From: Perkinsela sp. CCAP 1560/9
Lineage: Eukaryota > Protista > Euglenozoa: Kinetoplastea
Assembly (NCBI GenBank): GCA_965644495.1
Contig: CBFFSA010000011.1
Span: 124,001-188,000, forward strand
Direction of reading: 5' to 3'
Length of the DNA: 64,000 bases
Shown here: one piece after another, positions 11,869 through 64,000 of the stretch
Position numbering within the stretch: position 1 is the stretch's first letter
Layout of the letters: every line of letters begins with the position of its first letter
Made by a program: the position numbers and the translations under genes
The notes under the pieces: generated by a model
The model's input: the letters and a program-made list of their open reading frames with translations, nothing else
The model's database searches: none
Told to the model about the DNA's origin: nothing

Positions 11869-13100
11869 CAGGGTTCGCAGAAACTATAAAACTATCAATA
11901 TAGTACTATATAGTTACTATAAACTTTTTTCGAAAACTATAAAAAACTATATTTTTTTGTTTCACATTTTAGGCACTCCGAAGCTCACCAACACGCCATA
12001 AATACACGGCGAGTTCATTTGTGTACGATTTTTCTTATTTTTAAACCCGAAAATTGATGCCCGAAATTAAAGTTACGAGGGGTAGTTTCTGCAAAGATTA
12101 TTTTATTGAACTGCTGCACACGGAGGGAAGTAAACAAGCGGTTGAATGTAACTTGTGTCAGGAGGGGACGTACCCCAGTCCCATCGCGTGGCCTTGACAG
12201 ATTGCCTTGTGCGAATCTTGCGTCCCGAACATCTTCTCACTGCATCGCTGTCGCCGCGCTTTGGCTGGAGCCACCGACGTTATGTCTTGGGACTGAATAA
12301 CTGCTGCTCACAATTCCATGAGTTTGAATAAATACAATCATATGAGTCTGAATAAAGTACGCGGTGTGTTGTCGAGTGGAGACAGTTTCTGTACCTTGTT
12401 GTTAATCCTTTCTTTCCCCGGCAACGGGCATACTCTTACTGTATTTTCATGCCCGTTGCCGGCCGGCACTAAGGTCGGAACTGTCCCTCTTGTCGCTGAA
12501 GCAGGGGACGCGCTTTCACCCCTTCACCCCTCCCCGACTCACTCCCCTGGAGTGAGTGTGCTTCCCCCTCTCGGCTTTTTTCGACTTGTCTTTTTCCTCT
12601 CCGAGAGGGCCATGCGTCACGGTGGCCTCCCTTGAGGACCACTAGGCGTGTCCTCCGCCGACGAGACTCGGTTCTCTGCACCTGGGGGTCGCCCAGCTCT
12701 CTGCACCTCGGCTCTGTCGCAGCTCTCTGCACCCGGATTGCCCCCGAAACTGTAATATGGGGATTACGCATCCGGCTCTCTGCACCTGGGACGCCAGCTC
12801 TCCGCACCCGCACACCTCCGGCGAGGACGAAACCTCACATGATCCACCCGTCGTATGCGGGATAAGGACATGGTGAGTAAATCTCTGCACTATAAGTGCA
12901 TGATAAAACAATTGTACTTCCTATCGTCACTCCTTTCGCATGCGTTTCATTGCTATTTCCGAGGAGATGACACACTAGTTGATGATATTTTTCGGCGGTG
13001 ATGGAATCGCGGGGAAGAGGGAGGATGTTTCGATAGCTATGTAACCCAGGATAAAGTGGACGAGGGAGGTTCTAAAAGCACCTTTAAACCACCACAAAAA
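11869..13100 (+). mobile_element. Truncated copy of hAT-type MITE
   Basis: Starts CAGGGTTCGCAGAAACTATA; colinear with 34880-35585. Confidence 0.88.
12383..12911 (+). mobile_element. ~530-bp non-coding insertion headed by a spliced-leader exon sequence
   Basis: Absent from the sister MITE (empty site GGAGAGTTTGTACTTCC at ~35390). Starts (A)CAGTTTCTGTACCTTGTTG, has internal CTCTCTGCACC repeats and ends GATAAAACAA. Confidence 0.8.
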
Positions 13101-24839: not shown

Positions 24840-27800
24840 CCTATCCTATCCTAAAACACTGGTTATTAAAACCAGTTAAGAAAACAACCTTTTCTTACTT
24901 TGTAACAACTTCGGATCCTTAGTAGTTTCATCCTTACCCCCCCCCCCCCAGATTCTTCCATTACCTGTTGAAGTTCTTTTTTGGTCCCTTTATGCTGCTT
25001 CTTTTTGACTTTATGAGTATTACTGGAACCTAAGTACTCATTCTTTTCCGAAGGGAGTTCCACGGAACTTACACCTACCTTGAGAGGCGGTGTACCATCC
25101 TCAACCGCACATCGCTTAGCCACAGACAACGTTTTAGTCTCACCAGACAAAATCGATGTTTGTACTTTTTGTGAGCTCAGAGTTCGAGCTGTGACTACAC
25201 CTGGCGTCTTTTTTCTCCTCTTTGGTTCTGAGGTATGAAGAGTCTTGCGTGTTCCTGAAACGGCCAGCGCATCAGCCTTCTCATTATATGTGTTCCCATT
25301 ATGGGACCTCACTTTGCACATGAATACTTCAACGTTCTCAGCTTGCATTGACCGAATTTTCCTGTCCAATAAGGGCAGAAGATCCCCATTTGGTACTTTA
25401 TTATACCCAATAACACGGCGCCGAAATCTCATTAAATGAAAGAAATTCCATACGTAGAAGGAATCAGTGTGTAATATTAGCTTCTTTGCTCCTTCAGGTA
25501 TAATGTTTAGTGCTTGTTGTAGGGATTCCATCCCTGCTCTCTCTGGTGTGTCAGCATTTAATCGTATGGAATAGTGTTGATCATTCTGGTTAGTCTGCTT
25601 TATGACGATTCCTGCGCCGCCTCTGCCTTCATTGGTGCCTCTAACGGTGCGAACGGAACCATCAATATACATATGTACTTCCTCTTCCCCTATCGGAAAG
25701 GGGTCGGGTCCTTCTTCAACAAACTGTAGCCCGTAACATTCGCCTCTGATTGCATTCCTGTGTTTGGCCTTCCATTGTGATGATTGTAATCTAATATAAT
25801 CTGGTAGTGGCTCAAGGTTTTGCCTGAGTTCTTCGCATAACTTTTGCCAGTGTGTTTGATCCGATGAATAAACAAGAGCTTCCTCAAGGGTTATTCCTAA
25901 ATCTTTGAAGCACGCTTCACTTGGAGAAGATTGTCGGGCCGTTTCTTTAGATTTCCATTGTACGAGTTCTCGATAGACTGGCAAGTGTCGCAGCATGTGC
26001 CCGATGAGTTTCGCCCTACTGACACGATGTACAGTGGAAAATCTCGGGGTCCCGCAGTAGAGAGATTCCAAAGAGAAGCAGTGACCGAAATCATCTAGCT
26101 TCGCGCAGTTGCAGGCAAATCGTCGCATCATGTTGATCTCCACCTCCACTCTTTTCAAAACAGCATTAGAGATAAACAGTGCCCCGGCTCCGAATGTCAG
26201 AATTGGGTACACCAAACAGTCGAATAGTCTTAATTTGGTTGCTGCGGCTAAAGGAGAAATCCAAATTTCTCGCATTCTACGGAATGCAGCCCACGTGAGT
26301 CGTAGTCTATCCTTGATTGGTGCTGAAGCCGTTGCATCCTGCATGTGCCCAAGGTGTCGGTATGAGTCTACCAAAGGGATTTTCCCAAGAGATTCTGATC
26401 TAAGTTCTCTTGAACCTCCAGGTACCTTTCCGAATGCCATCCAAGCTGTCTTAGTCCTACCAAGAGCAAGAGACAAATTTGCGGGACGTGCTTCCTGTGC
26501 CGTCGTAGAGGACAAGAGTGCAATATCGTCAGCATAGTCAATATCCGTGAGCCTGACTTCTTGAATACCTCTACTTTTCGTACCAGTACTCTTTAAAAGA
26601 ATTCCCTGAGGCTTTTTATCGAGAGCACGATGAAGGATACGATCAATTACAAGTACAAAAAGATATGGCGCAAGAACATCACCCTGAAGAATTCCAGTCG
26701 TAATCGGAAAAGTCTGCGTGTTCCCGTACGGTGTGCGCACTATCCCCTGAAGATCAGTGTAAAGAGACATGATTGTGCGAGTCATCGCAGGACCGACGCG
26801 AAAGGCATCAAGAGCGGAACGAATAGCATGATAAGAAACGGAGGGGAACGCCTTGGCAAAGTCAATGAATGCTACTAATATGCCTCGTTTGTCTCTTGTT
26901 GCGCGTGTGGTTAAGTCATTCAATAGTAATTGAGCACCTGCGGTGGACCTGTCCGGGCGAAACCCAAATTGACTATCACGCAGCAACCCCTCTATTGATG
27001 GCCGTATACGACGCAAAATCATGCAGTTCATTAATTTTACTACACTATTAACTAGACAAATAGGGCGCCAATTAGAAATTTGAGATAGATCACCTTTTTT
27101 GGGAATCGGAACTTGTATAACAAGTTTCCAGCACTCTGGCGACTCTCCTGTTTGATGGATTTTGTCCATAATTTGCAAGAGAGAGGATCGTATTTCAGGA
27201 TGTCTTGTGATAGACCTTAAAGCTTCGGCAGGAATGTTATCTATACCCGGAGCTTTGTGTCTAGCAAGTCTTTCAGCGCTCTCTGCGAGCTCTTCACCAG
27301 TAAATGGACCGTCAAAAATGGTGTTTCTCGGAACTGGAACCTGATCAAAGTTTATATTGGGGTCGCCGCGGTCGTCTCCACCAATTCCAGCAAAGAATTG
27401 TTGAATAATTCTAAGTGATTCTCGTTTTGATCTCGCTTCAATTTTGAGAGATTCCCGGTATATCCCGCATATTCTTCTCAAAGTTCGCCAAGGATTAGAC
27501 CTATTTTGCCGTAGTTCAGACTCGATTTCTTCGCACTCACGTCTGATCTCTGCTTCAATTTCGTCGCCATGCCGCTCAACAACGTTTTTGAAATGCTCCG
27601 GATTACGGCTCTGAATAAATATGTCACGGAAACGTGTCTTTGAAGTCTGGTCTGTCTGTTGGGTCATGGTTTCTGTCTCGAGATTTGGGGATTCGGGGTC
27701 TTCTTTGTCGGATGGCTTACAGGCTAATTTATTTGCTCCGTCTACCATGATTTTAGAAAGCTGTTCCCATGTAATGTCTTCCTTTTTCTGTGCAGCGGAA

Positions 27801-29330
27801 AAAACTAGTTCTTGGAATTCTTTTTCTTGTTTTGGGTCCCCGAAAAAGGCCAGATTACGCCACTGCTTCCCTTTTTGTTCTCGCATTTCCATTTGATCTT
27901 CAAATTTACAATTACAGCACAATGTGTAGTTGGGATCGGTGATTTAAGAACCTTATGTCTACTTATGCTTGAAGAAAAACGTTCACTCACTAATATGTGA
28001 TCAAGTTGCCTGCATACGTTTTTGCCTTTTATCTTCGTGGGCAATTCGCACGTCCACTTTCTCCGGCTGGGGCAGAGGGAGTGTGCTGATCTACATTCAA
28101 TGGAGCAGAGAAGGCCTCTCATTCTCGATACCGCCGGTAAATCCATGCGATAATTTGATACCATTGTCAATGGTGCATTAAAGTCGCCCATAACAATTGT
28201 TGGTCGCTTACGACCTTTTGCACTAACCTCCTTGCACGCATGTTCGACATCCCCCAAAAACTCAGCATGAGCGGTCTCTGAGGAATCTCTAATTGGCGCG
28301 TAGACGTTAATTAAGGTACCAGTCCCTTGCTCTAGGGAGCATTCTGCTCCCATCACTCTGGGGCTCACTTCTCTTACGTTTTGTAAATGCATCTGGCTTA
28401 CGATAGCCAAACCGTTATAAGCATCTTTCGCGCGTGCAGATTGAAGATGATGTCAATAATTTCTGTAATTTGGATTGCAAAAGACAATTAGTAACCACAG
28501 TGCCCCCCGTTCCGACTAATAACAATTTCACAACGCTTCCTGAAACTCTTCAACGTTTTCTGAACCGTTGCAGAGTGGGTCTGTTTCAATTTAAGGAAAG
28601 ACCCCTCAATGGCGGCTTCCAGTTGCTGTCGATTTCGGGGTCGAAGAAGATTTTTGTCTGTGTCCATCACAGACCACAAATATAAATAATTTGTGCGCCG
28701 TAGCGGAGTACGATCCTGTGCGCTCGTATTCCGCCACCAAAAGCATGCGGTGACTCTCTTTGACGGGGGCGGGGGAAGAATACGATCTATCGCTCAGTAC
28801 TCCACGGGAAGTCCTCGAGCGAGCGCGCTTTTGGGGCATTTTCTAGTAAAAAATGTAATTCCTGCGAGGGAAAAAAGCGAAATGTGGTATCAAAAAATAT
28901 GTACGTTAAAATCACAGGATTTTAATGCGCCTAAAACATACAACTCTGTGAGAGCTATCCAATGCGCTATTATTTTCCAAAATTGGACAACTTTTACGAA
29001 TTTTAGACCCCCCCACCTTTAGACCCGCACCCCTGTATATGTGGTACTGCCCCCCTAGGTGTTCCACCTGTCGATAAATAATCACATTTACACTGTCCTT
29101 TGGTGAAAAAGTGTACCTGGTTTCCTGCAAACACATAACGTCAATCCCCTTACGCTGCATAAAAGAAAGAACCTCAATAAGACACGTACACCTTCTGAGT
29201 GAGAATTCGTCATCTCCTTCAAGTTTCAAAGTTGTCACATTTAGTGTGCCAAAAGTTGTTTTCTCCTTCTCAGCGGAACGTTCAACGTTCTCCGAGTCGT
29301 GTTGGGCATGTTTGCCACGCGATGCCCATG
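24840..29330 (-). mobile_element. Near full-length LINE (APE endonuclease-RT-RNase H), one frameshift and one insertion
   Basis: APE motifs GTLNV, CLQET (29036-29260), NVYAP, MGDFNA, LDHILV (27805-28449). RT/RNase H ORF 24866-27922 with DYADD, YIDGS, KVRSHNGNTYNEKADALA. (GATAG)n tail at ~24840. Confidence 0.93.
28450..29035 (-). mobile_element. Internally deleted Tc1-like element, one TIR remaining
   Basis: TIR ending ...CACCCCTG+TA at 29035; MPQKRARSRTSR N-terminus homologous to 36172..37263; splits the LINE APE sequence YHIY/LQSARAKDAYNG. Confidence 0.85.
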
Positions 29331-32383: not shown

Positions 32384-33710
32384 AACCCCTCGACACGAAT
32401 AAAGCACCCCCCTTTATTTTTTGCGTGCGGGGACCCATGGGGGTTGCAGCACCACTTTATCGTCCAGAATTTTGAGATCTGCACGTTCCCGTGGTTTTTA
32501 GCTTCATTTAAAACTTTTAAAAAAATCAGTTTCAGAAATATTTTCTTTCTAAAATTTCATGGTAAAATCCAAGTACCGTCCCCCAAAGGGGGGGATGACC
32601 CCTATAGGTAAGACATTATTGCGCCTGAGGTTCGAGGACGGTGTCCCAAAGAAGCAACTTGCACGAGAATTTAATATTTCTGTAAAATATGTGAGGCAAT
32701 ATCTGAAAGCAAAAGAAACCAATAAAACCAAAATATTTACACCGAAAAAAAATATCTTACGTCGCAGAAAAAAAATAGTAACCATTATTTCACCAAAAGA
32801 CCTTGCTGGAGTGCCGAAACACAGCAGCGCTAGATGCATTGCGGGGAGATTGAGTAAAAAGGGGGTACATGTCACAAAACGCACTGTTCAACGTGACTTA
32901 AAAGCAATGAAATATACTTATTCCCCACGCCCGGTTACTATGGCGTTGACCGAACGTCAGAAGGCTAAAAGGGTTGAGTTTGCCTTTGCATGGAATGGGG
33001 ATTCACGCATAATTGTATTTTCTGATGAAAAAATCTTTGATACTAATGATATGCGTAAAAAAATGTGGGTTGCCCCGGGCGAAAAGGCTACTCCAAGGCA
33101 GAAAATGCGTTGGGCCCCAAAGTGCCATGTGTGGGGTGCCATTGGAGTTGGGTGGCGTTATCTAGCTATTCTTCCCAATGACAGCTCAATTACGAGCGAA
33201 ACGTATATTAAAACCCTGCGTAAGACTCCTTTCCCCCGTAATTTTATTTTTCAACAAGATGGAGCAGGCGCACACACTGCAAAAATGACAAAGTCTTATC
33301 TTTTTGAATCAGAAATTCAGTATATCAAAAATTGGCCTGCCAACTCACCTGACCTCAATCCTATAGAAAATGTATGGGAAATGATACAGCAACGAGTATG
33401 TGGAATGAACCCCTCGAGTACTACTTCGCTTATTAGGTGTGTAAAAAAAGCATTTAAAGAAATCCCCCGAAGGGAAATAAATAAAACTGTTTTAAGCTTC
33501 GATCGTCGACTAGAAGCCTGCGTAAAGTGCAAGGGAGAAAAAGTGAAAAAGTGGTAATCGTCTACTTATATTTTACCTTATTCACCCCAGGACAATTTTA
33601 CAAGGTGCGCAAAGTCTATTCACTGAGATCTGCAAAATGCCACAAGAATTAGCTCAAACGGACTTACCATACAAATTTTAGAGGGGGGTGCTTTATTGTG
33701 TCGAGGGGGT
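32384..33710 (+). mobile_element. Tc1-like transposon, complete
   Basis: TIR A(A/C)CCCCTCGACAC..AATAAAGCACCCCCCT, TA duplicated. Confidence 0.95.
32559..33557 (+). CDS. Tc1-like transposase, DD35E, intact 332 aa
   Basis: HTH N-terminus, FSDEK, QQDGAGAH, WPANSPDLNPIENVW. Confidence 0.95.
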   Translation: MVKSKYRPPKGGMTPIGKTLLRLRFEDGVPKKQLAREFNISVKYVRQYLKAKETNKTKIFTPKKNILRRRKKIVTIISPKDLAGVPKHSSARCIAGRLSKKGVHVTKRTVQRDLKAMKYTYSPRPVTMALTERQKAKRVEFAFAWNGDSRIIVFSDEKIFDTNDMRKKMWVAPGEKATPRQKMRWAPKCHVWGAIGVGWRYLAILPNDSSITSETYIKTLRKTPFPRNFIFQQDGAGAHTAKMTKSYLFESEIQYIKNWPANSPDLNPIENVWEMIQQRVCGMNPSSTTSLIRCVKKAFKEIPRREINKTVLSFDRRLEACVKCKGEKVKKW

Positions 33711-35995: not shown

Positions 35996-37460
35996 TATGG
36001 GTGGGCACCTTCAGAGTGGGGGGGTCTAAAATTCGTAAAACTTGTTCAATTTTGGAAAGTAATAGCGCATTCGAGAGCTCTCAAATAGTCTGGTGTAATC
36101 GTAAAAAGCACTCTGCGAAAGTTTACGGGAATCAAAGAAAGCTAGAATGGTCCCAAACACGAATTGCAACTTTATTTTTTAAGCGAAAAAGTCCTTTTTT
36201 TCCAAAAAAAAAAGGTTTGAAGTGCCTCGTATGCACTCTCGATAGAAGAGAGGAGATCTGCGCGATTGCGTGGTCGCATGCGATCCTTGTGCTGATCCAT
36301 GATATTCCACAAGTTTTCGATGGGGTTGAGATCCGGCGACTTTGCGGGCCAGGGGAGCGTTCGCACGTTTTGCTGCTGAAAAGTACGCCTTGCCAAGTTG
36401 TGCGCAGGGCAATTGTCCATAGCAACAACTGCACGGTGCCTGTGTAGGTAGTTCAAAAGACCATTACGCTTGGTCATGGCAGCTTCGAAAACAGCCCCGT
36501 TCACAGTAACTCTATTTCCCTGCTCATCTCTATTAGGAAAAATGTGCAGATGAAATCCATGCTTTATGCTTACCCCCATCCACACCATTATACCATCGCC
36601 CCCTACCCACGCTTCCAGCTCACCTAGCTGCTCTTTTACAGGGTCGGACCGTCGGCAAAGGTAGGTGTTTTTGGTAGACTTCTTGCAGGTAAACTTTTTC
36701 TCATCACACCAAATAATATTATCAAGCTGGTGTTCGCTCCAACCCGACATGTCCTTACAGAATCGGACTCTAACGTCTTTATGCTGTTGGGTTAGTCGTG
36801 GTTTACGCTGAACTACGCGGAGGATAATATCGGGCTTCAAAGCTCGATCCAAAGTGCGTCTGGAACACTGAAACCCTCTGGATAGAAGTTCGCGATGTAG
36901 AGCGCACCATGATTCCACACCATAAGGAAGATCCCGTGTACCCTCATCTACTATGCGGAGTGCTTCTCCGATAAACAGTGATGTCCTAACTGTAAAATTC
37001 AGAAGTCTGGGAATGCTTTCGACATCACCAGTTTCGCTGTAACGAATGACCCATCGCTTCACAGTGCTCTTCGCTACTTCAAAGTGGCGTGCTGTAGCAT
37101 TGTAGGACCCAGAACGAAAGTAATGGTCTACGAGAAGCATGCGATGCGACGGCCTTACCTTCCCAGGTGGTGAATAAGCATCTCTCTGGAAGGGAAACCG
37201 TGATGTTCGCGATCGTACACGTTTCTGAGGCATTAACGGCGCAAAAAAACTAAAAAAAGCCAAAAAAACTGAAAAATTGCATCTTCGGGGAAAAATAAAT
37301 TCCGTGTTTTTCTATCATTTATCTCGAATGTCTAAAAACGGGAAACGGATGTTGCCATTACACCAGACTATTTGAGAGCTCTCGAATGCGCTATTACTTT
37401 CCAAAATTGGTCAAGTTTTACGAATTTTAGACCCCCCCACTCTGAAGGCGCCCACCCCTG
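35996..37460 (-). mobile_element. Tc1-like transposon with ~105-bp TIRs; transposase 36172..37233, DD32E, C-terminal frameshift
   Basis: WCDEK, AMDNCPAH, WPAKSPDLNPIENLW; TIRs at 35996-36100 and 37357-37460; TA flanks. Confidence 0.92.
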
Positions 37461-39091: not shown

Positions 39092-39114
39092 GTACAGAAA
39101 CAGTATCTTTATCG
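39092..39114 (-). other. Spliced-leader exon relic
   Basis: CGATAAAGATACTGTTTCTGTAC, 22/23 identical to 59943-59965. Confidence 0.65.
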
Positions 39115-51535: not shown

Positions 51536-53670
51536 CACTCACTCACTCACTTTACACTAAGCCCCGGAATAGGGCGTTAGTTAAATATCTATCTGTATTT
51601 ACGCTCAATACATTCATCATCTAACTCTCCAACTGATTTCGTTTTCACGTCGATTGCCTCGTACTCGGTGCGCTTCGAAAGCGAAACACAGCACCTTGCG
51701 TACACTGGATTTTATGGTCCCATCTTGGTTTCCGTCAAAGGGGATATTTTTCCGCGTTTGAGGTCGCGTCTCGTGGTCTACCTTTCTTGGTGCGGTTCGC
51801 GGCGGTACTTAATTGTGAGCCAGGCGCGGGGCAATGCTGTGATAAGTGCCGTTCTAGTGTAGTAGCCGAGGTCTTGCGCCTTTTCTCTGAAAGAGCGCCG
51901 AAAAGAGCTGTCTTTGCCAACGTGTCACACTGATCGTTGTATGGGTTGCCGCAATGCCCCTTTACTTTAATCACGTAGAATTTGACGCCATTCTCCTCTA
52001 AGGTCTTTATTGCACCACCTAAATCCCAATAAATGTCGCTGTTTGGAAGGCCATTGTATCCTATTAGGTAATACTTTCGTCGCGTATTGCGAATAAAATG
52101 CCATACTATCCACGAATCCGTATGCAGTACGATTGTACCCTCAACTTTGGGTGCTCTCTGAATAGCTAGTAATGCCGCATAAAATTCCGCTCTTTCTGGC
52201 GATGGTGTGCCAAGAATCTCCTTACAAACAGTAGAACTAGCCACTTCATGGCCACACTGAACTTCAACAATCCCAATTCCAATCTTTCCGATGTAACCAG
52301 AACTAACTGAGGCGTCGGTATAAAGGTGTAGAACGTTGTTGTCACTTGAGAAAGGTGTTGGACCTTCTTCAGCGTACTGCAGGGCTGAAAGATCATTTTC
52401 CCGCTGTGCAGCAGCTGCAATGCGGTGCCAACCGCTTGATCTATAACCAATGTACATTTTAGGATTCTCTAGCCCCATTTGAAGTTTTTCAACATGTTTT
52501 TTCCAACATTTTCTATCCTCCGCATATACCAGGGCTTCCTCGACCACTAGTTCCATATCCCCGGTGCAAGCTTCGGATGGAGAACGAATTCGACTCTTTT
52601 CTTTAACGCGCCACTGCATCAGTTCCGAATATATCTCTGAATGCCGTATTAAGTGTCCTACAAGACGAGCCCGGTTAACTTTGTGCAGTGTGGAAAAAAG
52701 TGGGGTGTCTATATATAAGGCGGATATTGGCACACTTTTCCCAGAATGATCCAGTTTCGGACACTTACAAATAATGCGACACATCTTATTTACCTGTACA
52801 TCTACCCATTTCAATGTGGTTTCGCTCAACGCTAGTGTGCCCGAGTTGTAATTTAGGATAGGGTATACGAGGGCATCGAACAAACGAAGTTTTGTCTTGA
52901 CGCTCAAGGGCGATACCCATATGCCCCGAAATTTTGAGAAACCTGCCCAGGTAAGTCGCAACCTGTCCCTAATACATGCCAATGGTTCAGTTTCATGGAA
53001 AAGATGTCCCAGATACCTATAGGAAAGTACTTTGGGCACCGTCCCCAAAGGATCGGATATCATTTCATCGGGGCCTCGTTGCCTTCCTAGTTGCATCCAC
53101 GCTGTTTTAGCAGGGCCTACTCCTATTCTTAGGTTCGCGGAGAGGGCTTGTTCCGCTGTATCCTCAATCATACTCTGTAGATCAGCCTTGTTATCTGAAA
53201 AGAAAAGGAGATCATCAGCATAATTTAGATCCGTAAGACGTGTTTCCCTCAGGCCTCTGCTCTTGGTACCTTATAGAAGGATGCCATGGGATTTTGAATC
53301 AATAGCTTTGCTTAATATACGATCCAGAACCATTACGAAGAGGTAGGGAGCGAGGACATCCCCTTGAAGAATGCCGGTTGTAATGGGGAATGTTTCTGTT
53401 AAACCTTATGGTGTTCGCACGACCCCTCGCATATTCCGATATACTGACATAATCATTTCTCGCAATTTCGGTCCAATGTGAAACGCCACTAGGGATGCAT
53501 GAATGACACAATGAAACGGATGGAAAAGCTTTCGCAAAATCTACAAAACCAATGCACATCCCGTTTCCTCTCAATGCTTTTACTCGTGCTTCGTTGAGAA
53601 TCGCCTGGGCTTGCATTGTCGAACGGTCAGGTCTGAACCCATATTGATTATGGCGAAGCACAGGTCAAAC
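51536..53670 (-). mobile_element. 5'-truncated LINE (RT-RNase H)
   Basis: QYGFRP, DFAKAF, NYADD, LYTDAS, KVKGHCGNPYNDQCD; hairpin plus (GTGA)n tail at 51536-51580. Confidence 0.92.
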
Positions 53671-54874: not shown

Positions 54875-56216
54875 AACTCCCGCTCACGAAAAGTGACCCC
54901 CCTCTTTTTTTTTGTACAAATGTCCGTTTGAGCTGATTTTTGTTGCATTTTGCAGATCTCAACACAAGGACTTTGCGGGTGAAGAAATGAGACAAAAAGA
55001 AACGAATACGCACAATTTACAGAAGAATTACCATTTTGTCACTTTTTCGCCCTTCAATCTTATACACGCTTTAAGTCGAGAATCAAAACTTAATACTGTT
55101 TTGTCGATCACTTTTTGAGTTAAAGAAGATCATGCTTTACGTACACATCGGATAAGTGAAGGTTTGTCCGATGGCGTTTGTTCGTCTACCGCCTCTTGGA
55201 CCATAGACCAGACGTTTTCTATGGGGGAAAGGTCGGGCGAGTTGGGGGGCCAGTTTCTTAGAACATCACTCATTCGATTCTCAATATACTCTTTGGAGGC
55301 ACGGGCAGTATGTGCCGTTGCCCCATCCTGTTGAAATACACTATTAGGGGGGAAATCTACCTGTTTTAATGTTTCTATGTACGTCTCACTTGTAATAGAT
55401 GTGTCATTTCGTAGAATAACCAAATACCTCCACCCCACTCCTACAGCACCCCAAACTTGGCATCTTGGTGCCCAAAGTACTTTTTGACGCAGGGCTGCTT
55501 TTTGACTGCGCTTTACCCACATGTGTCTTCTGCTATCGTTGGTATCAAATATCTTTTCGTCCGTAAAAATAACATGGGCAGTATCCAATTTGTAACTCAA
55601 AGCAAATTGTACTCTTTTTTGCTTTTGTCGTTCGGTAAGCCCTTGGCATACTGGCCTAGCGGCATAATTGTAATCCAGCGATGCTAGATCTCGCTTTACA
55701 GTGCTTTGCGAAACTTGTATCCCTTTTTTACACAGTTGGCCTTTTATACGCCTTGAAGAATTGAATTTTGGTACCCCAGCGGGGTCGAGAGGAACCAATA
55801 TCTTTTCAATTTTCTTTTTGCGAGATTCGATTTTTTTAGTGGTCACAGGACTCAAAGTGTATTCCCCGCTAGATTTTTTTTCGTTCAGATATTTTTTGAT
55901 TATCCTTCTAGAGACGTTAAAATCACGGGATAATTGTTTTATCGGAACACCTTCTCCCTGTCTCATCTTCAAAAGAACCTTACCACTATCCGTAAGCCCC
56001 CCTTTTGGGAGCCAATATGGTGATTTGGTCATTTTTGGAAAAAAAAGTTGAAAAACCAATTATTTTTTCTTTACTAAATTTTAAAATTTTAAAATGAGCT
56101 AAAAACAGCGGGAACGTACAGATCTCGAAATTTTGAACGAAAAAGTGGTATGATAACCCACCCACGCCCCCCTGTGCTAAAAATAAGAGGGGGTCACTTA
56201 TTCGTGAGCGGGGGTT
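54875..56216 (-). mobile_element. Tc1-like transposon, DD35E transposase 55130..56032 with a premature stop near the C-terminus
   Basis: TIR AAC(T/C)CCCGCTCACGAA..AGTGACCCCC, TA flanks; FTDEK, QQDGATAH, SPDLSPIEN; frame continues past the TGA to EKVTKW. Confidence 0.93.
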
Positions 56217-56538
56217 TATAACAAAAATTATAACAAAAATGAGCCAAAAAGGGTAAAAATAAGACTCCTTCCTTCCTGACGCAATTTATTATACAGTTTA
56301 TGATATAGATTATCCGTGTACCAGACTCAAAAGAATTTTGGGTCAAATGAGCATATTTTTGTACTCTACAATTTTTTCAATCAAAATTCACCCCGACAAG
56401 TAAAACAAAGTCCTTAAACAAGTTCTTACCAAAGCCATTTTATCATTCCTCATTAATACGGTACAGAAAGAGTACAAATTTACCCACACCTTAATCCCTG
56501 GTCTACTTTACTTTGCGTACTTGTGGACTCTCCCCTGC

Positions 56539-57153
56539 ATGTCCGGATCCCTCACCTGTCGACGGCTCTCCTCCGCGGACTCAGCCCCCACGTCCTCTCG
56601 ACGCGGTCGTGTCCGCGGGGCGACGCTCCCCCACGAGTACGCGCTCGCCCAGTTCATCCAAGGCATTGAAAACCCCCACCCCTCATGGACCCCATCCAAC
56701 CCCGCGGAGGAGTGGTCGGGTGTGGAGTGTAATAAAAGGGGGGAAGTGGTGGCGATCCGCTGGGGAGGGCGACGCCTGCGGGGGTGCGTGCAGTGGCGGA
56801 GTCTCCCCCCGACCCTACGAACGCTTTTACTTCCCAGTAATGCGTTGACGGGGACGCTGGAGACGCAGGAACTGCCGCCGGAACTGCAGATTTTTTCCGT
56901 GTCGCAGAATCAGCTCTCGGGGGTTCCGGATATGACAAGGCTACCGGATACTTTGGAGGTGGCGTGTTTGTCGTCCAACCTATTTGAGGGTGAGGTAAAA
57001 CTGAATGCTCTTCCTGGAACGCTCCGAACGCTTGTGATGAGCAATATGAGAAAGCTTCGAGGCGAGGTGTATTATGCCGAGTTACCATGCCCACTTAGAG
57101 ATTACATTAGCGTTAGTGGGACGTCAATCAGAGTTCTTCCAGAACGAAAATGA
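56539..57153 (+). CDS. Leucine-rich repeat protein
   Basis: RGRVRGATLPHEY, WSGVEC cap, LPxxLxxLxLxxNxLxG repeats. Confidence 0.85.
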   Translation: MSGSLTCRRLSSADSAPTSSRRGRVRGATLPHEYALAQFIQGIENPHPSWTPSNPAEEWSGVECNKRGEVVAIRWGGRRLRGCVQWRSLPPTLRTLLLPSNALTGTLETQELPPELQIFSVSQNQLSGVPDMTRLPDTLEVACLSSNLFEGEVKLNALPGTLRTLVMSNMRKLRGEVYYAELPCPLRDYISVSGTSIRVLPERK

Positions 57154-57426
57154 GTACGCCTTCCTGATACCCAACAAAGCTGTAAAAGAGTTGTTGTGGA
57201 TGCGTAAACTCTGTTTCATAACCGATTCTGCAACTTATTAGCTACTCAATGTACATGTACAAGAGCACACAGAACCGGGTATAAATACTGTTCGTTCCCC
57301 CTCATCAATATTTACCATCTCACTAATTACCTCCATCTCACTAATTACCTCCATCTCATTAATCCATAAGTTGTTATAAAGTAAATATCCGTAAGGTGTT
57401 AAAGACCATACTTTTTAAACATACAG

Positions 57427-58383
57427 ATGTTTTACTGCATTTGCGCGGGAATTGGAATGCTCATTGGAGTACAACGTAATAGGCTTTTTCTGCAGATGCA
57501 TTACACGAGACTCTCGGAGAGTCCCCCGCACAAACGACGCCGAATCGCAAATTCAGCGTTACCGGAGAATTCTTTATTAACATCGAACATAATACGCGGC
57601 AAGGTACGTGGGGCTGTCTTGCCACAGGAATATATTCTGGCTCAATTTACACGCAATATGACTTTTGCTGAACACACATGGAAGACAGAAAATCCCGCAT
57701 GTGGGTGGGCTGGAGTGCAGTGCCAGAACGGAGAAGACGTCTCAAATATTCAATGGGAAGGACGTTCACTGCGAGGAGTGCCCGAGTGGCGAGAATTAAC
57801 TCTGCCGCAGTTGCTTTACCTAGAGCTTGGGACGTATTTTACCGGAAACCAGCTCTCGGGGAATATCACGTGGTCATGGCTTCCCAAATCTCTTTTGGTA
57901 TTTGTGGTAGACAACAACGAATTTACAGGAAGCGTTGAAACAAGCTGTCTTCCTTCCGCTCTGCAGACCTTTTCCTTGAATCTTAACCAGTTCGTTGGTA
58001 CGGTAAATTTCAGTGGTTTGCCGAAGTCCATTGTACGAGCACAATTTGAAAGCAATAAGTTTACTGGAAGCGTTGCCCTCGAGGCCCTCCCGCTAAATTT
58101 ACAATGTCTCTATGCTGATAGAAATAATTTTTCTGGTACGGTCGATCTTACTCGGCTTCCAATAAACACGCGGTCGATGTACCTGTCTCATAATGCTTTT
58201 CACGGGGAACTTGATCTTACTTTGTTGCCGCTGGACTTACGATTTCTGACGCTGCAGAACAATTCCTTTACGGGAACAGTCGACTTCAGTCACCTTCCTC
58301 CCGATTTGATCAGTCTCAATTTAGAACATAATCTCCTGACTAGTGTGTCTCCGAACCATATTCCTCAGTGTGTGATCATGTAG
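57427..58383 (+). CDS. Leucine-rich repeat protein (start may be 57497)
   Basis: RGKVRGAVLPQEY, ACGWAGVQC cap, ~8 24-aa LRRs. Confidence 0.9.
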   Translation: MFYCICAGIGMLIGVQRNRLFLQMHYTRLSESPPHKRRRIANSALPENSLLTSNIIRGKVRGAVLPQEYILAQFTRNMTFAEHTWKTENPACGWAGVQCQNGEDVSNIQWEGRSLRGVPEWRELTLPQLLYLELGTYFTGNQLSGNITWSWLPKSLLVFVVDNNEFTGSVETSCLPSALQTFSLNLNQFVGTVNFSGLPKSIVRAQFESNKFTGSVALEALPLNLQCLYADRNNFSGTVDLTRLPINTRSMYLSHNAFHGELDLTLLPLDLRFLTLQNNSFTGTVDFSHLPPDLISLNLEHNLLTSVSPNHIPQCVIM

Positions 58384-58910
58384 GCTGCACAAAAGGTAGG
58401 CCGATTTATCTTCTTTGTTAGATGTGACGGTAGTTCTCAACATGAAATTTATTGCTGGAGTTACTGCAATTGTCGCTTCGCGTTGAAAACTACACCCATT
58501 TTTAAAGATACGATCATTCCGTTTTTAATGCCTTTAGTCTTTTGTTAAATTTGTGCTGTACAAAAAAAAATATCACAGTTGTTTGCTGCGTTGCTAGGTG
58601 CCCTCCGGCTGCGCAAAGAGGTGGTGAGCTGCCTGGACCCCCTCTACCGACAGAGTCCATGTCAAACCCCCTTGGCGACATCCCAAGTGGATTCCGTGAC
58701 GATCATATCGGCCATCGCACTACGGATTTAATCTCTGCACCAATGAGCGCATGATCATCAAACTACGACTTGAAGGCCAATATGTGTCAGCAGGGCAACC
58801 TCTATGTGCTGCAAGATGTACAGATGTAAGTTAATCTGACCAGATTTAGGTGAATAGTTAGTGAGTACAAGATGAATTTAATAGTTCGTACTTAAATCGT
58901 GCAAGTAGAA

Positions 58911-59944
58911 GGTGGCGTTAGCACATTTACAATGCATATTAACTGCACGTTTATAATGCATACTAAGCGGCACATTCAAATGCATATAGCACATTCACAT
59001 GCATAACAGCACATTCACATGCATAACAGCACATTCACATGCATAACAGCACATTCACATGCATAACAGCACATTCACATGCATACTAAGCGGTACTTTC
59101 ACTTGCATAAATCCGGCACATTCACATGCATAACAGTACATTCACATGCATAATGCACGTTCACATGCATACTAAGCGGTACATTCACTTGCATAAATCT
59201 GGCACATTCACATGCATATAGCACACTCACATGCATAACAGCACATTCAAATTAAAAAAAAAATAGGTACAGATTTCAACTTTTTCCAAAAGTTCGTGCG
59301 AGGTACTATGGGAGCTCACCTTTGCTCCCGGTGAGTCCCCGGAGTTGCGAGAGGCCTCCATACCCCGCAACTACCTCCTTCCCCCAGATAAATGGGGGGA
59401 AGATGGTAGTTGTTTTGGGGGAAATGAGAGGCCGAACACACGGAGGGGCCGGCCGGGCCACAGAGCCACGTGAAAGTGTGACACCCAAAAACTAAACCTA
59501 AATATTGTTTACCCGTCTGCAAAACAGAACCGTGAAATGCCACGTATAGATTGTTGGCCGAGGTACCTAATAAGTTCACCTTTGCTTCCGGTGAGGCCAC
59601 GGAGTTGCGTGAAGGCCTCCATACCCCACAACTACCACCTTCCCCCCCTATTTAGCGGGGGTCGCGCGAGCCTGTAATATCTACACGTTTTTTCTTGTCT
59701 ACACCTGAGCCTGAAATATCTACACGTTTTTCGGATTTTGTGATTAAAAGGGAAGAATGAACAAAATTGAGAAATATGCATGTGAATGTGCTATGTGCAC
59801 TATCAATGTGCTACATGCATGTGAATGTGCTGTTACGCATGTGAATGTGCCGCTTAGTATGCATTATCAATGTGCAGTAAATATGCATTTGGGTGTGCTA
59901 TATGCATGTGAATGTGCTGTTATGCCTATGAATGTGCTTTAACG
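58911..59944. mobile_element. Non-autonomous element with inverted 20-bp repeat arrays enclosing hairpin-module copies
   Basis: Left end GGTGGCGTTAGCACATT; GCACATTCACATGCATAACA repeats 58920-59250, inverted at 59775-59938; right terminus replaced at TAACG. Confidence 0.75.
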
Positions 59945-62860
59945 ATAAAGATACAGTTTCTGTACCTTCTTGTTGTTTATATTTATGTTTCTTTTATATT
60001 CTCTATAGAAAATACATGCGTCTGTAGCCCCTAACATGGCAAGCTCAGACGTTCCTACTCGAGCCGCACGTGGTGATAGGCACATCCGTTTACGTCGCAC
60101 GAACCGTACAGCTTGGAGCTACTTCCGCAGCATCAAAGCCGCCGCTAACAGTGACGTGGTTCGCGAAATATACAAGAACCCGGATACCGCGCGTGCTTTA
60201 ATCGCCAGAGCGTTCGACCAAAACAAGCCGGTCAAGGGCCTTATTATAGAATCTTTCAGTCTACCTCCGCAATATCGGACCCGACGTGCTGGCTCTACCG
60301 ATCAACGGACATACCACCAGACCATGGCCGACATGCACGAACTCCTGTTTGCCCCCACTTATGCCCGCCCGTACACCCTATCACGCGAGCTATCTGCACG
60401 TTGGGATAGCGCAGGAAGAGCCACTCTGCACGAGTTCGAAGTACAAGTTTGAAGTACACAACTCGGAACCGACGTCCCAGGATATGGTGAGTCCAACGCC
60501 ACAAATGAAGCCCAACAAACGCCAGATACGAACCCCCGCCAGGAATGCGGACACATATGTAGGGATAAACGTAATTGCGCCCACGACTGCTGCAAACGTC
60601 ATTTGCAGCCTCTAGATAGCGAACCAACACGAATTGAGACCTCCCAACGCAATTCGGCAACTACGCACCGCTTCCCCCCCACTTGCACGGTCACGCTCCT
60701 CCCCTGGGCCACGCTCTAACCCTCCGGACATAGCTTCCTCTACCCTAAATCAGAACCCTATCACACAAGAGTGCAAGCACGCCTGTAAAGATAAACTTCA
60801 TTGTTTACATCCTTGCTGCAAACGCCATCTGCCCATGACCACATCTCACCCGAACCCCGTTGCACAGGAAACGGGAAGTCCCACGGTGCCTCCTTCGCTA
60901 CCACCCCCTCTCCCAGTTCCACTGAAGCTAACGCCTGCCCCACGTAAACACGTATGTAAAGACAAACTGCTGTGCGCTCACCTGTGCTGTAAGAGACACT
61001 TACAGACAACGTCCTCGACTCAATTTGAACGGACAGAGAGTGAATCATTGGGTAATATGCCCCCTCGACGGCTGGTCAGCCGAACAGGACACAGTCAGGA
61101 CCCTGTCAACACGACCCGGCGAAGATCCCTCTCATCCGCGGTAAGTTCTGACATTGGTCTGCTTGCACGGACCACATACCGTGCAGCGCAGGAACTGTAT
61201 CTCCTTCCTCCACCACCCATAACACAGCAAGGTGAATGCGGACATAAATGTCATAACAAAACAGAGTGTCTCCACTCGTGTTGCAAGCGGCATTTACGAC
61301 CCCAGAGCCAGACTGAAACAGAACCAGACATCAGCCACAACCAATCGGAGCGCATTGACAACAACCCTGGACATGCCGAAAACAGTCAACAATCTCCAAA
61401 TGAAGAATTACCCGATATAGCGCCTGCTCAACATGGGGAAACGGTAGGGCATAATGAAAGTACACAACCACAAGGAAATACCGAAGTCGATTCCGACAAC
61501 GCCCAAAGCTGTAATCACCGCTGCGCGAACAGGTTCACGTGCAAACACGCTTGCTGTAAAAGAAATCTCAACCTTCCTGAATCTAAGAGTGCACTATTGG
61601 CTGCGGCTTCAGGTCTTAGGGGGTCGCGCATGAATCTTAAACTGACCCACGCCGTCTGGGAGTTAGCTGACAAGCTCAGCAATGAACTATTCCAACGATA
61701 CAAAGAACAAAATATTTGTAGCGCAACCGCAGCGGAAGACAACATCGCTACCCTCACGGCGTGTATAGTGGTTAGCTGCGCCGTAGCAGCAACCAGAGAA
61801 CATGGGGATCGCGGTGTCACAATTCGCTCTACAGCACCCCCTCAACGACTACACCGCCGACCCACATCGAATGAAAATGCTTGCAAGCACCTCCGAACCG
61901 AAACGAAGTTGCTCAGAGGAAAAGAACGCCACGCACCACGCGATACCCGTGTACAATTACATCGACAGGCCCGCAACGCTGAGGTTCTCGTCTCAAAATT
62001 CGCCAATGAAGCAGAACTTCTAGAAATACGGCGAGAGCAGAAGGAAGCAACCCTGCGCTTCTCGAAAAACGCATGGGCTGCAGCCACGGAAACATTAGAA
62101 AGACCGACTGACACTTCGTCCACACACCCGTACCCAACGTGCGAAACATTTGAGGTCGTAGAACACTTCTCAAAAATACTGCAACCACCTCTCTCTACCG
62201 CTAACCTACCAGACGAATCACAACTAACCAGCCAAAAGTGAACCCTCAAACCTGGGATGACATAACCCCTCAAGAGGTCACGCGCTTCCCTAGCGCGAAG
62301 AAATCATCCTCCGCTCCGGTACGAGACGCCATTCAAAACACATCACTGAAAAAGCTGAAGTCGCTGCACGAAGGAATTGCGAAATACTTCAATGACCTAT
62401 TACGTTGGAATGTCTGTCCAAAGGAGTGGAAAGCAGCAGTGGTCAAGCTCTTGCACAAGGGGGGGAACCGAATTCTCCGCAGAACTGGCGGCCGATAGCC
62501 CTAACATCGTGCCTCGGGAAACTACTACATACAATCATCGCCGCGAGAATAACTGAATACGCCACCACGGAAGGCATTATGGACACAACTATACAGAAAG
62601 GCTTCTTACCAAAGCTAGCCGGGTGTGTTGAACACACCGCTGCACTCAGTCACTGCATCCGGCACCCAAAGAAGAATCGTAAGCCTCTCTGTATGGTTCA
62701 ATACGACCTGGCAAACGCCTTCGGTTCCGTCCCACATGAAATAATTATCGCAGTACTAAAAAGGGCGCATATCGACCCAGTTATTATCCATTACATCCGA
62801 AAGCTCTATGAGAATGCAGAAATACAGCTCAAGCTGGAATCCGGACTTACAGAATCAATC
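59940..62860 (+). mobile_element. SL-headed R2-group (NeSL/Hero-like) non-LTR retrotransposon, degraded, interrupted within RT
   Basis: SL-like 59940-59972; five Cys/His repeats; RT motifs NWRPIALTSCLGKL, QKGFLPKLAGCVEH, DLANAFGSVPH. Confidence 0.8.
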
Positions 62861-62861
62861 G

Positions 62862-64000
62862 TTAACCAATCGTTGAATCCTTTTTCTCTTTTCTACCTCT
62901 ACTCTCTCTCTCCCCGGCGCAAGCCCATGACCAGACGTCGGCGTGGCCACCGGGGATCCAAGGATTCCGATACTGGGATTAACACCCCATCATCCTCGAC
63001 CTCAGGTAGACCTGCTACCACCCCTCTCAGGCGAGGCTCCAGCCCCCACCCCTCCGTAGAGGTGGAGGGGCTGCGCCAGCTCTCCATCGAGGAGCTGAAG
63101 AAGGCGAGCCCGGACTTGGTCGTCCGGGTCAAGGAGCAGCACAAGTCATGTGCCTGCGACTTCTGTGGCCTCCCTTTCGTGCCAACCAGGCGGGACAACC
63201 GCCTGTGTGAGGAGTGCGTTACCCTGCGCTCTCGGCACAGGAACGACGTTAGAGTGCGTGCCTCGACGCAAGCCTCAGGGACCCCTCCACCCAGTCCCAC
63301 GTCTTCCTCTCGATCCTCCCGAGCCAACTCCACAGCCCGCAGGATCCCACGTTCTTCTTCCTCTCGGGGGAGATCCCGGAGCTTTGACCGTACATTTACT
63401 ACGGTCGCCCCCACCCCTATCCTGAGGAAAGCAGCCAACGTTTCCTTCGCTCCTCTCCCCACCCCCGACAGTCGGAGCACGTCATACGCCCGCATCTCGA
63501 CGCCTGGCCTGGCGACCGCCCCCTCCCCCGATCACGTCGGACGCGATGTACAGCGACGCCCCCGCCCCGACGGAGCGTCCGCTGAAACTCCCCACGCTGG
63601 CGCAACAATTCAAGGAGATGGACGCTGTGCGCTTCAAACTCCTTCCCTCCCCTTCTAGCTCGGGGCTCCCTCTAGCCCAAACTGGAAGATGATCTGTCTC
63701 TCTGCGTCTCCTCTCGGCCCTACACGCGGAGCACGAGAGGATCTCCCTTGAGGAAATGGAGGCCCGGGCACGCCGTAAGCTGACCCTGGAGGCTGTCAGT
63801 GGTCTGCACGCGGCCCAGAAAGCCATCGAGGATCGCTTTCTTCTGATCAATGCGGGCCATTTGGTCTGCATTGAATGTGGGGTAGCCCAACTCCACCATG
63901 TAGCCCTACAGGCGCACCTAGTAAAGGTGCACGGTCCCAAGTGGCTAAGGAAAGCATATATTGCCCTGCTAAAGGAGCATGCCCCGGAAGCCCTCCTGAT
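62862..64000 (+). mobile_element. 5' part of a second element (CRE/SLACS-like?) inserted in the RT; ORF from ATG 62927
   Basis: Abrupt end of RT similarity, pyrimidine tract, CDFC..CEEC knuckle, then a C2H2 finger CIEC-x12-HLVKVH in a shifted frame. Confidence 0.5.

Follow-up and report, generated by a model that had tools for sequence, protein, structure and literature searches.

How does a mobile element come to carry, at its very 5' end, the exon of its host's spliced leader (SL)? The question is raised by a locus in Perkinsela sp. CCAP 1560/9, where we analysed a stretch of 64,000 nucleotides (contig C11, positions 124001-188000, of an assembly of 21 Mb in 110 contigs). This whole stretch is called the window, and positions are counted from its first letter unless a contig is named. 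Towards its right end lies a damaged retrotransposon without long terminal repeats (non-LTR), here named element A, which is headed by an intron-free copy of the SL exon. Kinetoplastid-type organisms transcribe their genes polycistronically and have no ordinary gene promoters, so that obtaining an RNA that is capped, translatable and copyable is a real problem for a mobile element. An initial annotation of the window offered two explanations for the leader: either the RNA of the element is trans-spliced and retroposed together with its SL, or the element belongs to a lineage outside the CRE clade that inserts into SL genes and carries the exon along.

Two solutions to the problem of RNA supply are known from related organisms. 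The trypanosomatid long interspersed nuclear element (LINE) L1Tc is reported to have an internal promoter, Pr77, and to yield unspliced transcripts (PMC1874656), and SLACS, CZAR and CRE reside in the SL genes themselves. The DNA described here points to a third, in which the SL of the host is borrowed and carried along. For Perkinsela, a genome paper reported a mini-exon of 38 bp and a single intact SL gene, besides more than 500 SL-like pieces scattered through the genome (Tanifuji et al. 2017, PMC5601477, Supplementary Note 1.3). The same authors found 24 of these pieces beside retrotransposon-like sequences, called the association "reminiscent of SLACS" and interpreted the pieces as SL genes in decay or as introns that had been retroposed (PMC5601477). 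SL-headed 5' ends of elements are not described in that paper; moreover, its stand-alone pieces include 20 nt of the intron, whereas the relic in the window stops at the end of the exon.

It is very probable, in our judgement, that the RNA of element A was trans-spliced and then retroposed with its SL, and that positions 59937-59972 are a relic of the cell's own leader. Five features read directly from the DNA carry this view: the relic matches the SL exon, it stops exactly where the exon does, it lies outside SL genes, such relics recur in sister copies and in unrelated families, and relics have been re-spliced at AG dinucleotides within them.

The spliced leader RNA gene

A bona fide SL RNA gene lies at C1:661.3 kb, with an exon reading AACTTTAACG...CCTTGTTG and an intron that starts with GTATGAGAAG (GTATGAG). 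The exon measures 38 nt and is followed by a structured intron of about 70 nt and a terminal T-run. Two such units stand in tandem with a spacing of 297 bp, and a 5S ribosomal RNA (rRNA) gene adjoins the pair (locus L041, C1:659001-668000; Rfam RF00001, 99 bits). This 5S rRNA gene was the sole match of an Rfam scan of the locus, which returned no SL RNA family. The layout of the units is the usual one for SL RNA genes of the kinetoplastid type, with a 38-nt exon. On the opposite strand, the spacer between the two repeats also has a stretch that resembles a tRNA (GGGAATCGAACC...).

Exon and intron occur together at only eight places in the whole assembly, and the border between them is uninterrupted in all eight. 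The initial annotation had proposed searching the SL genes for the element; none of the eight assembled intron-bearing genes is interrupted by it at this border. At least two of the eight (C1:410099 and C2:801598) have no proper exon 5' end. Within the exon there are two AG dinucleotides, one in AAAG at positions 13-16 and one in ACAG at positions 19-22, which matter for the tandem relics described below.

The relic at the head of element A

Compared with the exon of the SL gene in L041, the head of element A reads as follows.

59937-59972, forward strand: SL relic, corresponding to SL exon positions 3-38 of 38, with no intron

The relic agrees with the gene at 35 of 36 positions, the sole mismatch being CTTCTTG where the gene has CTTGTTG; this variant is found elsewhere only at C11:200345, in a tandem duplicate of the same locus and not in an independent insertion. 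Directly after the relic the sequence continues with TTGTTT, while at the same point the SL gene has GTATGAG, so the initial annotation was right that no GT donor follows. The 33-mer on which that annotation was based is present at 59940-59972 exactly as quoted and matches the exon at 32 of 33 positions. Together with the three occurrences in the window of a 13-nt core (ACAGTTTCTGTAC), against 0.08 expected, this shows that the match is not due to chance. A leader differing from the 33-mer would have spoken against the proposal; the SL gene, at the level of its DNA, matches the relic.

Two measures given for the relic need small corrections. The leader of the species had been predicted to be about 36 nt long, which is close and equals what is present in the window copy, but the gene encodes 38 nt. 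The distance to the first ATG, put at about 65 bp, holds for the ATG of the main open reading frame (ORF) at 60036, 63 nt downstream, but not for two tiny upstream ATGs at 59984 and 60016.

A further SL piece (GCGATAAAGATACTGTTTCTGTAC) occurs at 39092-39104 on the minus strand; the final 13 nt of the exon are missing from it, and unrelated sequence comes next. It amounts to a 3'-truncated relic, a form that retroposition of trans-spliced RNA does not predict.

Spliced leader relics across the genome

The relic of element A is one of many. The 3' half of the SL has 522 matches genome-wide, against none for reversed-pattern controls, and 372 exact SL 20-mers precede a base other than G, as opposed to the eight intron-bearing SL genes. 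Out of these 372 places we read 29 unique contexts as a census of families. The families that follow the SL in them number at least 11, each beginning with a short untranslated region (UTR) rich in T and C and having its ATG 23-63 nt further on. In every one of the 29 contexts the SL ends at the last G of the exon. The relics are 20-36 nt long, as expected from the 5' truncation of LINEs, and upstream they are often flanked by the A-rich tail of a preceding element or by unique DNA. Genome-wide, 286 relics reach SL position 3 as their 5' limit, as the relic of element A does.

One of the SL-headed families resembles short interspersed nuclear elements (SINEs). Its copy in the window, about 580 bp long, has a 20-nt relic at 12382-12401 and a strong hairpin (CCGGCAACGGGCAT...ATGCCCGTTGCCGG). 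The junction at 12382 falls right after an internal TTTAG of a longer form of the family, in which several junctions occur, and it probably marks the use of an alternative AG acceptor. Many copies of this SINE-like element exist elsewhere, several of them after the 3' ends of elements with a restriction-like endonuclease (RLE).

Tandem relics form a further class. If an encoded relic is transcribed and its internal AGs serve as acceptors, re-splicing predicts two products, the SL joined to ATACAG.. and the SL joined to TTTCTG.., and both are found. Ten places on various contigs carry them: eight read SL followed by TTTCTGTACCTTGTTG (SL-TTTCTG..) and two read SL-ATACAG.., against none in controls. 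The joins lie exactly after the ACAG or AAAG of the encoded relic; the window copy itself shows none. Such an AG-recycling signature has been described for the relics of the dinoflagellate SL (PMC12014239), and tandem relics joined at AG would be hard to obtain from template jumps or from insertion into SL genes.

The family of element A

An intact relative, B, lies at C1:3064942-3069640 (L031:942-5640). One ORF, at L031:1021-5523, encodes its whole protein of 1501 aa, which is identical to P0001; the proteins of A and B are 37-65% identical. The protein P0001 contains five copies of a Cys/His module (residues 154-514). Further towards the C-terminus B has a LINE-type reverse transcriptase (RT; motifs NWRPI, QGDTLSP and FADD), then a CPIC..H..C finger (C..C..H..C), and finally the endonuclease motifs RPD-x14-E-L-T and ERKRAKY, which align to the same motifs of R2. 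The RT of the C1 copy matches Pfam RVT_1 (E=2e-19), and RT structures of R2 and L1 in the PDB match that of the family at E=1e-35 to 1e-25. The label "R2-group-like" given by the initial annotation is thus well founded for the family, which has the RT, the C-terminal CCHC finger and the RLE, even though the window copy has itself lost the RLE core. An apurinic/apyrimidinic endonuclease domain was not found, since neither the window copy nor the C1 copy has a Pfam Exo_endo_phos match. Nor do the element ORFs match Peptidase_C48 (an Ulp1-like protease) in Pfam. The N-terminal 560-700 residues have no match in Pfam, the PDB or the ESM Atlas, and neither C2H2 fingers nor a Myb motif were detected there.

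Word search, exhaustive HMMER search and the ESM Atlas yielded no named reference of CRE, NeSL, Hero or R4. HMMER gave 466 matches below 1e-30; the best 150 of the 466 were unnamed, and the ten clusters that were looked up were unnamed or a sponge "uncharacterized protein". Element A may be classed as an RLE-bearing non-LTR retrotransposon associated with (TG)n and other simple repeats.

A conserved 5' block of the family (GCGTCTGTAGCCCCTAAYATGGCAAGCTCAG) occurs at four places, namely the two C11 duplicates, C1:3065002 (B) and C19:31525, and is preceded at all four by the 3' end of the SL, which makes three independent loci, all of them SL-headed. The relic of B measures 23 nt in this assembly and 27 nt in an independent ENA assembly of the same sample, and in both it follows directly on (GT)n. 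At the C19 copy the SL end (TCTGTACCTTGTTG, followed by TACTATG) lies 9 nt 5' of the conserved block. This C19-type SL-headed form is also a loose contig end in two DNA sequencing runs, and DNA contigs gave further SL-headed 5' variants, four DNA-type runs of one study being covered. A sister family (P0002, locus L045, with copies in L025 and L029), 43% identical in the RT-RLE part, is SL-headed as well. Full-length copies without the leader, which the initial annotation had named as contrary evidence, were looked for; those that keep their 5' end all begin with the SL.

Two other copies of A are 5'-truncated. The first, at C1:3070504, begins at about element position 1011 after (TG)n and has (TA)n at its 3' side; the second, at C1:663752, begins at about element position 3768, also given as 3707, after a 17-bp tandem repeat. 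Such truncation looks like usual LINE behaviour. The 3' end CACTATGATWAAATGA, common to the three subfamilies A, B and C, has no poly(A); beyond it comes (TA)n, (TG)n or unique DNA. On the few copies available, B lies between (GT)n tracts, subfamily C after (GTAT)n, and both the window copy and the one at C1:663752 after tandem repeats of 17-20 bp. This suggests a preference for simple repeats of the TG/TA type, as judged from four or five copies only.

How the leader would be added and renewed

Element RNA would be produced within a longer RNA, presumably through read-through transcription. The 38-nt SL would then be trans-spliced onto a putative acceptor upstream of the 5' UTR, thereby capping the RNA, and the new copy would start with an SL exon that is free of intron and ends exactly at the exon boundary. 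Trans-splicing would probably be repeated at each round. This would be the mechanism of the dinoflagellate SL relics, applied here to retrotransposons themselves and in a kinetoplastid-type genome. The first explanation of the initial annotation gains from several sides: from the SL-headed sister copies, the exact exon ends, the hundreds of SL-headed copies in unrelated families and the tandem relics joined at AG. The UTRs of A and B beside the SL cannot be aligned, yet both elements keep the SL with no or one mismatch; the leader being kept while the neighbouring UTR diverged argues for repeated addition and not for a single ancient capture.

Several points weigh against this reading. The addition of the SL, both to ordinary mRNAs and to the RNA of the element, is deduced from DNA, and the sole sequencing run guessed to be RNA (X5) gave no contig on the intact C1 copy (4.8 kb). 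The acceptor behind the junction of SL and UTR was not seen. In one family, F1, all 16 copies that retain the start of the UTR are SL-headed and a search for a master copy that lacks the SL and has an AG acceptor gave none, while splicing at the AG nearest to the ATG was seen in none of 40 copies. A copy of the third subfamily, C (locus L034), has no SL and begins within the UTR after (GTAT)n, which would be compatible with 5' truncation. Finally, the second base of the leader differs: outside SL genes, the first 98 long relics comprise 66 with T (..ATCTTTAACG) and 23 with A, whereas the two full-length SL genes on C1, the only ones with a readable 5' end, have A (AACTTTAACG). This difference is unexplained; misreading of a modified nucleotide, an untemplated addition or a further variant of the SL gene could account for it.

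The counts in F1 imply that renewal at the same junction needs either a non-AG (TG) acceptor at the end of the relic (..CCTTGTTG) or a few master copies that were not seen. A broader proposal, which we put forward tentatively as a possibility of less than even weight, is that SL trans-splicing may be a regular source of capped 5' ends for whole superfamilies of retrotransposons without a promoter of their own. The encoded relic would then be an acceptor that can be used again, since its 3' half, rich in pyrimidines, and its terminal TG would let a new SL replace the old one at the same junction, and the change from A to T at position 2 would reflect how RT reads modified cap-proximal nucleotides. 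If relics are indeed reusable acceptors, this would explain why every full-length copy has an SL head with a single relic and why stacked relics are rare. Possibly it would also explain the TG acceptors in a quarter of the genes of Perkinsela, reported as 26% of cases in the genome paper (PMC5601477).

Alternative explanations

The alternative that fares best, though we regard it as unlikely, is template switching, in which the RT would jump from an unspliced element RNA to SL RNA, to a free SL exon intermediate or to an SL-bearing mRNA, so that the SL would be added during synthesis of complementary DNA. R2-type RTs are known to make end-to-end template jumps, and one set of loci looks like the product of one: at L015-L019 (C1:1.47-1.50 Mb) an extra 17-nt SL piece, CTTTAACGATAAGATAC, and AT stand after a poly(A) and before a full SL-headed element (CTTTAACGATAAGATAC-AT-CTTTAACG...), as if a jump had taken place at the end of reverse transcription. 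A jump to a free exon is possible for individual copies. As a general mechanism, however, template switching leads one to expect variable joins, or sequence of the intron or of mRNAs, and every junction read ends at the last G of the exon; moreover, the tandem relics are joined exactly after AG, a spliceosomal signature.

Still less probable is a one-time capture, by which the ancestor of each family would have taken the SL once and passed the relic on, its transcription coming from an upstream, internal or flanking promoter (for instance the GT-rich flank) with no further trans-splicing. Such an origin would agree with the identical junction of SL and UTR in all full-length copies of a family and with the lack of an SL-less master with an AG acceptor in F1. 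Against it, the relic still matches the SL gene although the adjacent UTRs of A and B have diverged beyond alignment. One and the same SL position is the starting point of many independent insertions, which points to an RNA whose 5' end was that of the SL and not to read-through, and the tandem relics are evidence of transcription and renewed splicing of encoded relics.

Insertion just downstream of the exon in SL RNA genes, after the manner of SLACS, CZAR, CRE and NeSL-1, with the exon carried along from the SL promoter, is highly improbable: the elements that target the SL genes of trypanosomatids and nematodes are indeed LINEs of the RLE type (PMC4640811), and one copy (C1:663752) lies about 2 kb from the C1 SL/5S locus, but that copy is 5'-truncated, with the 5S gene and other repeats in between, no copy lies inside an SL RNA gene, the eight intron-bearing genes are intact at the border, the upstream flanks are foldback repeat, minisatellite, (GT)n or (GTAT)n and not the SL promoter region, the 5' extent of the relic varies, and the same SL stands at the head of many unrelated families, among them elements whose tails are A-rich. 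The absence of copies from SL genes, the micro- and minisatellite flanks and the variable 5' extent thus speak against the second explanation of the initial annotation.

Comparison with known systems

The closest parallel to the trans-spliced and retroposed leader is offered by the relics of the dinoflagellate SL (DinoRL; PMC12014239, PMC6050394, PMC5585692), in which a DNA-encoded leader likewise stands at the 5' end of retroposed sequences, new splicing likewise cuts the relic at an AG inside the leader (here SL-TTTCTG.. and SL-ATACAG..), and the relic likewise tags RNA-mediated copying. Two defining features of DinoRL, an intron-free leader ending at the exon boundary outside SL genes and re-splicing at AG, are present in the DNA described here. 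Three differences are evident: the tagged sequences are mainly retrotransposons (RLE-type and other LINEs, SINE-like elements) and not host retrogenes; most copies have a single near-complete leader in place of stacked truncated relics; and the lineage is of the Euglenozoa type, with a 38-nt kinetoplastid-like SL.

Elements of the CRE clade (SLACS, CZAR, CRE1/CRE2) and NeSL-1 are likewise RLE-bearing non-LTR retrotransposons of hosts with SL trans-splicing, physically tied to SL sequence. They insert at a fixed site inside SL RNA genes, those of the CRE clade within the SL exon and NeSL elements in SL1 genes, and have SL gene sequence on both sides, while the family of A lies outside SL genes, carries the exon at its head only and has no poly(A) tail; neither C2H2 fingers nor an Ulp1 protease, which nematode members of the NeSL clade have, is detectable in it.

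Among structures in the PDB, the best matches of the family are those of R2 (vertebrate R2 9nl3, R2Tg 9dou, R2Bm 8gh6; E=1e-35). One alignment spans RT and thumb; a separate one takes in the finger at the C-terminus (C..C..H..C) and the PD..(D/E)xT..K..KY endonuclease core. Unlike R2, the family lies outside ribosomal DNA and has five novel Cys/His modules in place of N-terminal C2H2 and Myb motifs, and identity is only about 25-30%. As regards flanks, Togen of fish ((TG)n), some HERO elements and Dong ((TAA)n) (PMC4640811) are comparable, since copies of the present family likewise occur within or next to tracts of (GT)n or (GTAT)n, with (TG)n or (TA)n after the 3' end; the comparison has only four to five informative copies on our side, and the window copy lies in an arm of a 20-bp minisatellite.

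Our literature search found no paper with this SL sequence. Nor did it bring up a description of mobile elements headed by the SL in kinetoplastids or in diplonemids, the Diplonema genome paper not being covered.

For other work on such genomes, SL relics provide a built-in tag of RNA-mediated copies, so that insertions and the use of splice sites can be studied from DNA alone, and they may keep a trace of RNA modification near the cap. They also call for caution: dispersed "SL gene fragments", and the acceptor dinucleotides scored beside them, can be the heads of retroelements and not decayed SL genes.

Structure and state of the window copy

Element A extends from 59937 to 62860 and resumes beyond the window after a nested insertion. 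Its parts and immediate surroundings are listed below.

58911-59936, no strand: foldback-like host unit (left arm 58911-59252, centre 59253-59756, right arm 59757-59936)
59973-60035, forward strand: T-rich 5' UTR of element A, with two mini-ORFs upstream of the main ATG, an acceptor-like TCTCTATAG and the family-conserved block ATGCGTCTGTAGCCCCTAAC
60036-60668, forward strand: N-terminal coding piece of A, homologous to B residues 1-199 (tblastn with B, 37% identity)
60544-61570, forward strand: five Cys/His modules, C-x-H-x-C-x5-C-x-H-x-C-C-K-R-H/N-L (from the sequence and the motif positions in B)
61234-62241, forward strand: central coding piece of A in frame 2, corresponding to B residues 407-733, with a stop at 62239-62241
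62205-62860, forward strand: N-terminal half of the RT, from the NWRPI motif on (Pfam RVT_1, E=1.4e-10, profile positions 6-112; tblastn)
62851-62860, forward strand: left copy of a 10-bp target-site duplication, AGAATCAATC; the right copy, AGAACCAATC, is at C11:194682, outside the window
62861-64000, forward strand: start of the nested element, 7.8 kb in all, which runs past the window and is not part of element A

On its left side, element A directly adjoins the right arm of the foldback-like unit, whose outer end is truncated there. The arms of this unit are inverted arrays of a repeat of about 20 bp around a centre of about 500 bp (direct-repeat families D1-D3, inverted pairs I1-I25). At this border the initial annotation had seen a join through TAACG microhomology, a detail that we do not confirm: with three more bases (CTT) on its 5' side, the relic starts at 59937, which is SL position 3. 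A TAACG join would give GCTAACGAT, whereas GCTTTAACGAT is observed, and no more than 2 nt (CT) can be shared with the host repeat (..AATGTGCT). The host end expected by that annotation does exist, as the reverse complement of the left terminus of the foldback-like unit at 58911-58927, but there is no TAACG join there. A related foldback centre with different arm repeats lies directly 5' of the truncated copy at C1:663752, so that units of the foldback type adjoin two copies of A's family.

The ORF of the N-terminal piece meets a stop at 60452 and its frame is broken beyond. The Cys/His modules are presumed to form a nucleic-acid-binding region, and the array of five may be a new nucleic-acid-binding module of retroelements. 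Near 62239-62241 the frame changes, and the C1 copy has a frame change at about the same point; the RT piece has a further frameshift near 62460 and is interrupted by the insertion at 62860, as the junction shows in comparison with uninterrupted copies. Homology to B ends at B residue 1387, just before RPD, and the RLE core is gone. With three frame breaks, the nested insertion of 7.8 kb and deletions in its 3' part, the window copy is dead.

The locus also lies in a tandem duplication of 16,395 bp, 99.99% identical, which spans window position 55305 to 64000 and on to C11:195699 and is repeated from C11:195700. Its junction cuts A just before the RPD motif of the nuclease. The duplication could be a very recent event or a duplication in the assembly.

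Nested and other mobile DNA in the window

The nested element reaches from 62861 to C11:194681 (L042, 861-8681) and is a second, unrelated RLE-type LINE, with a YLDD RT, a CxC..H..C finger, the motif GPD..DVT..K, an A-rich tail and the 10-bp target duplication listed above. Of the SL, nothing but GTTG is left at its head, where an odd partial repeat of the target, 11 nt long, precedes it, and the start of the element's UTR is found only in the two duplicates. An ORF of a DDE_Tnp_4 transposase lies within it on the opposite strand.

Positions 1-58000 of the window are nearly all mobile DNA, with the following coding features.

15706-17871, 32559-33557, 36172-37263 and 55130-56059: ORFs of Tc1/mariner-like DDE_3 transposases
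24866-27922 and 51735-53171: LINE ORFs with RT and RNase H
57427-58383: leucine-rich-repeat (LRR)-like ORF

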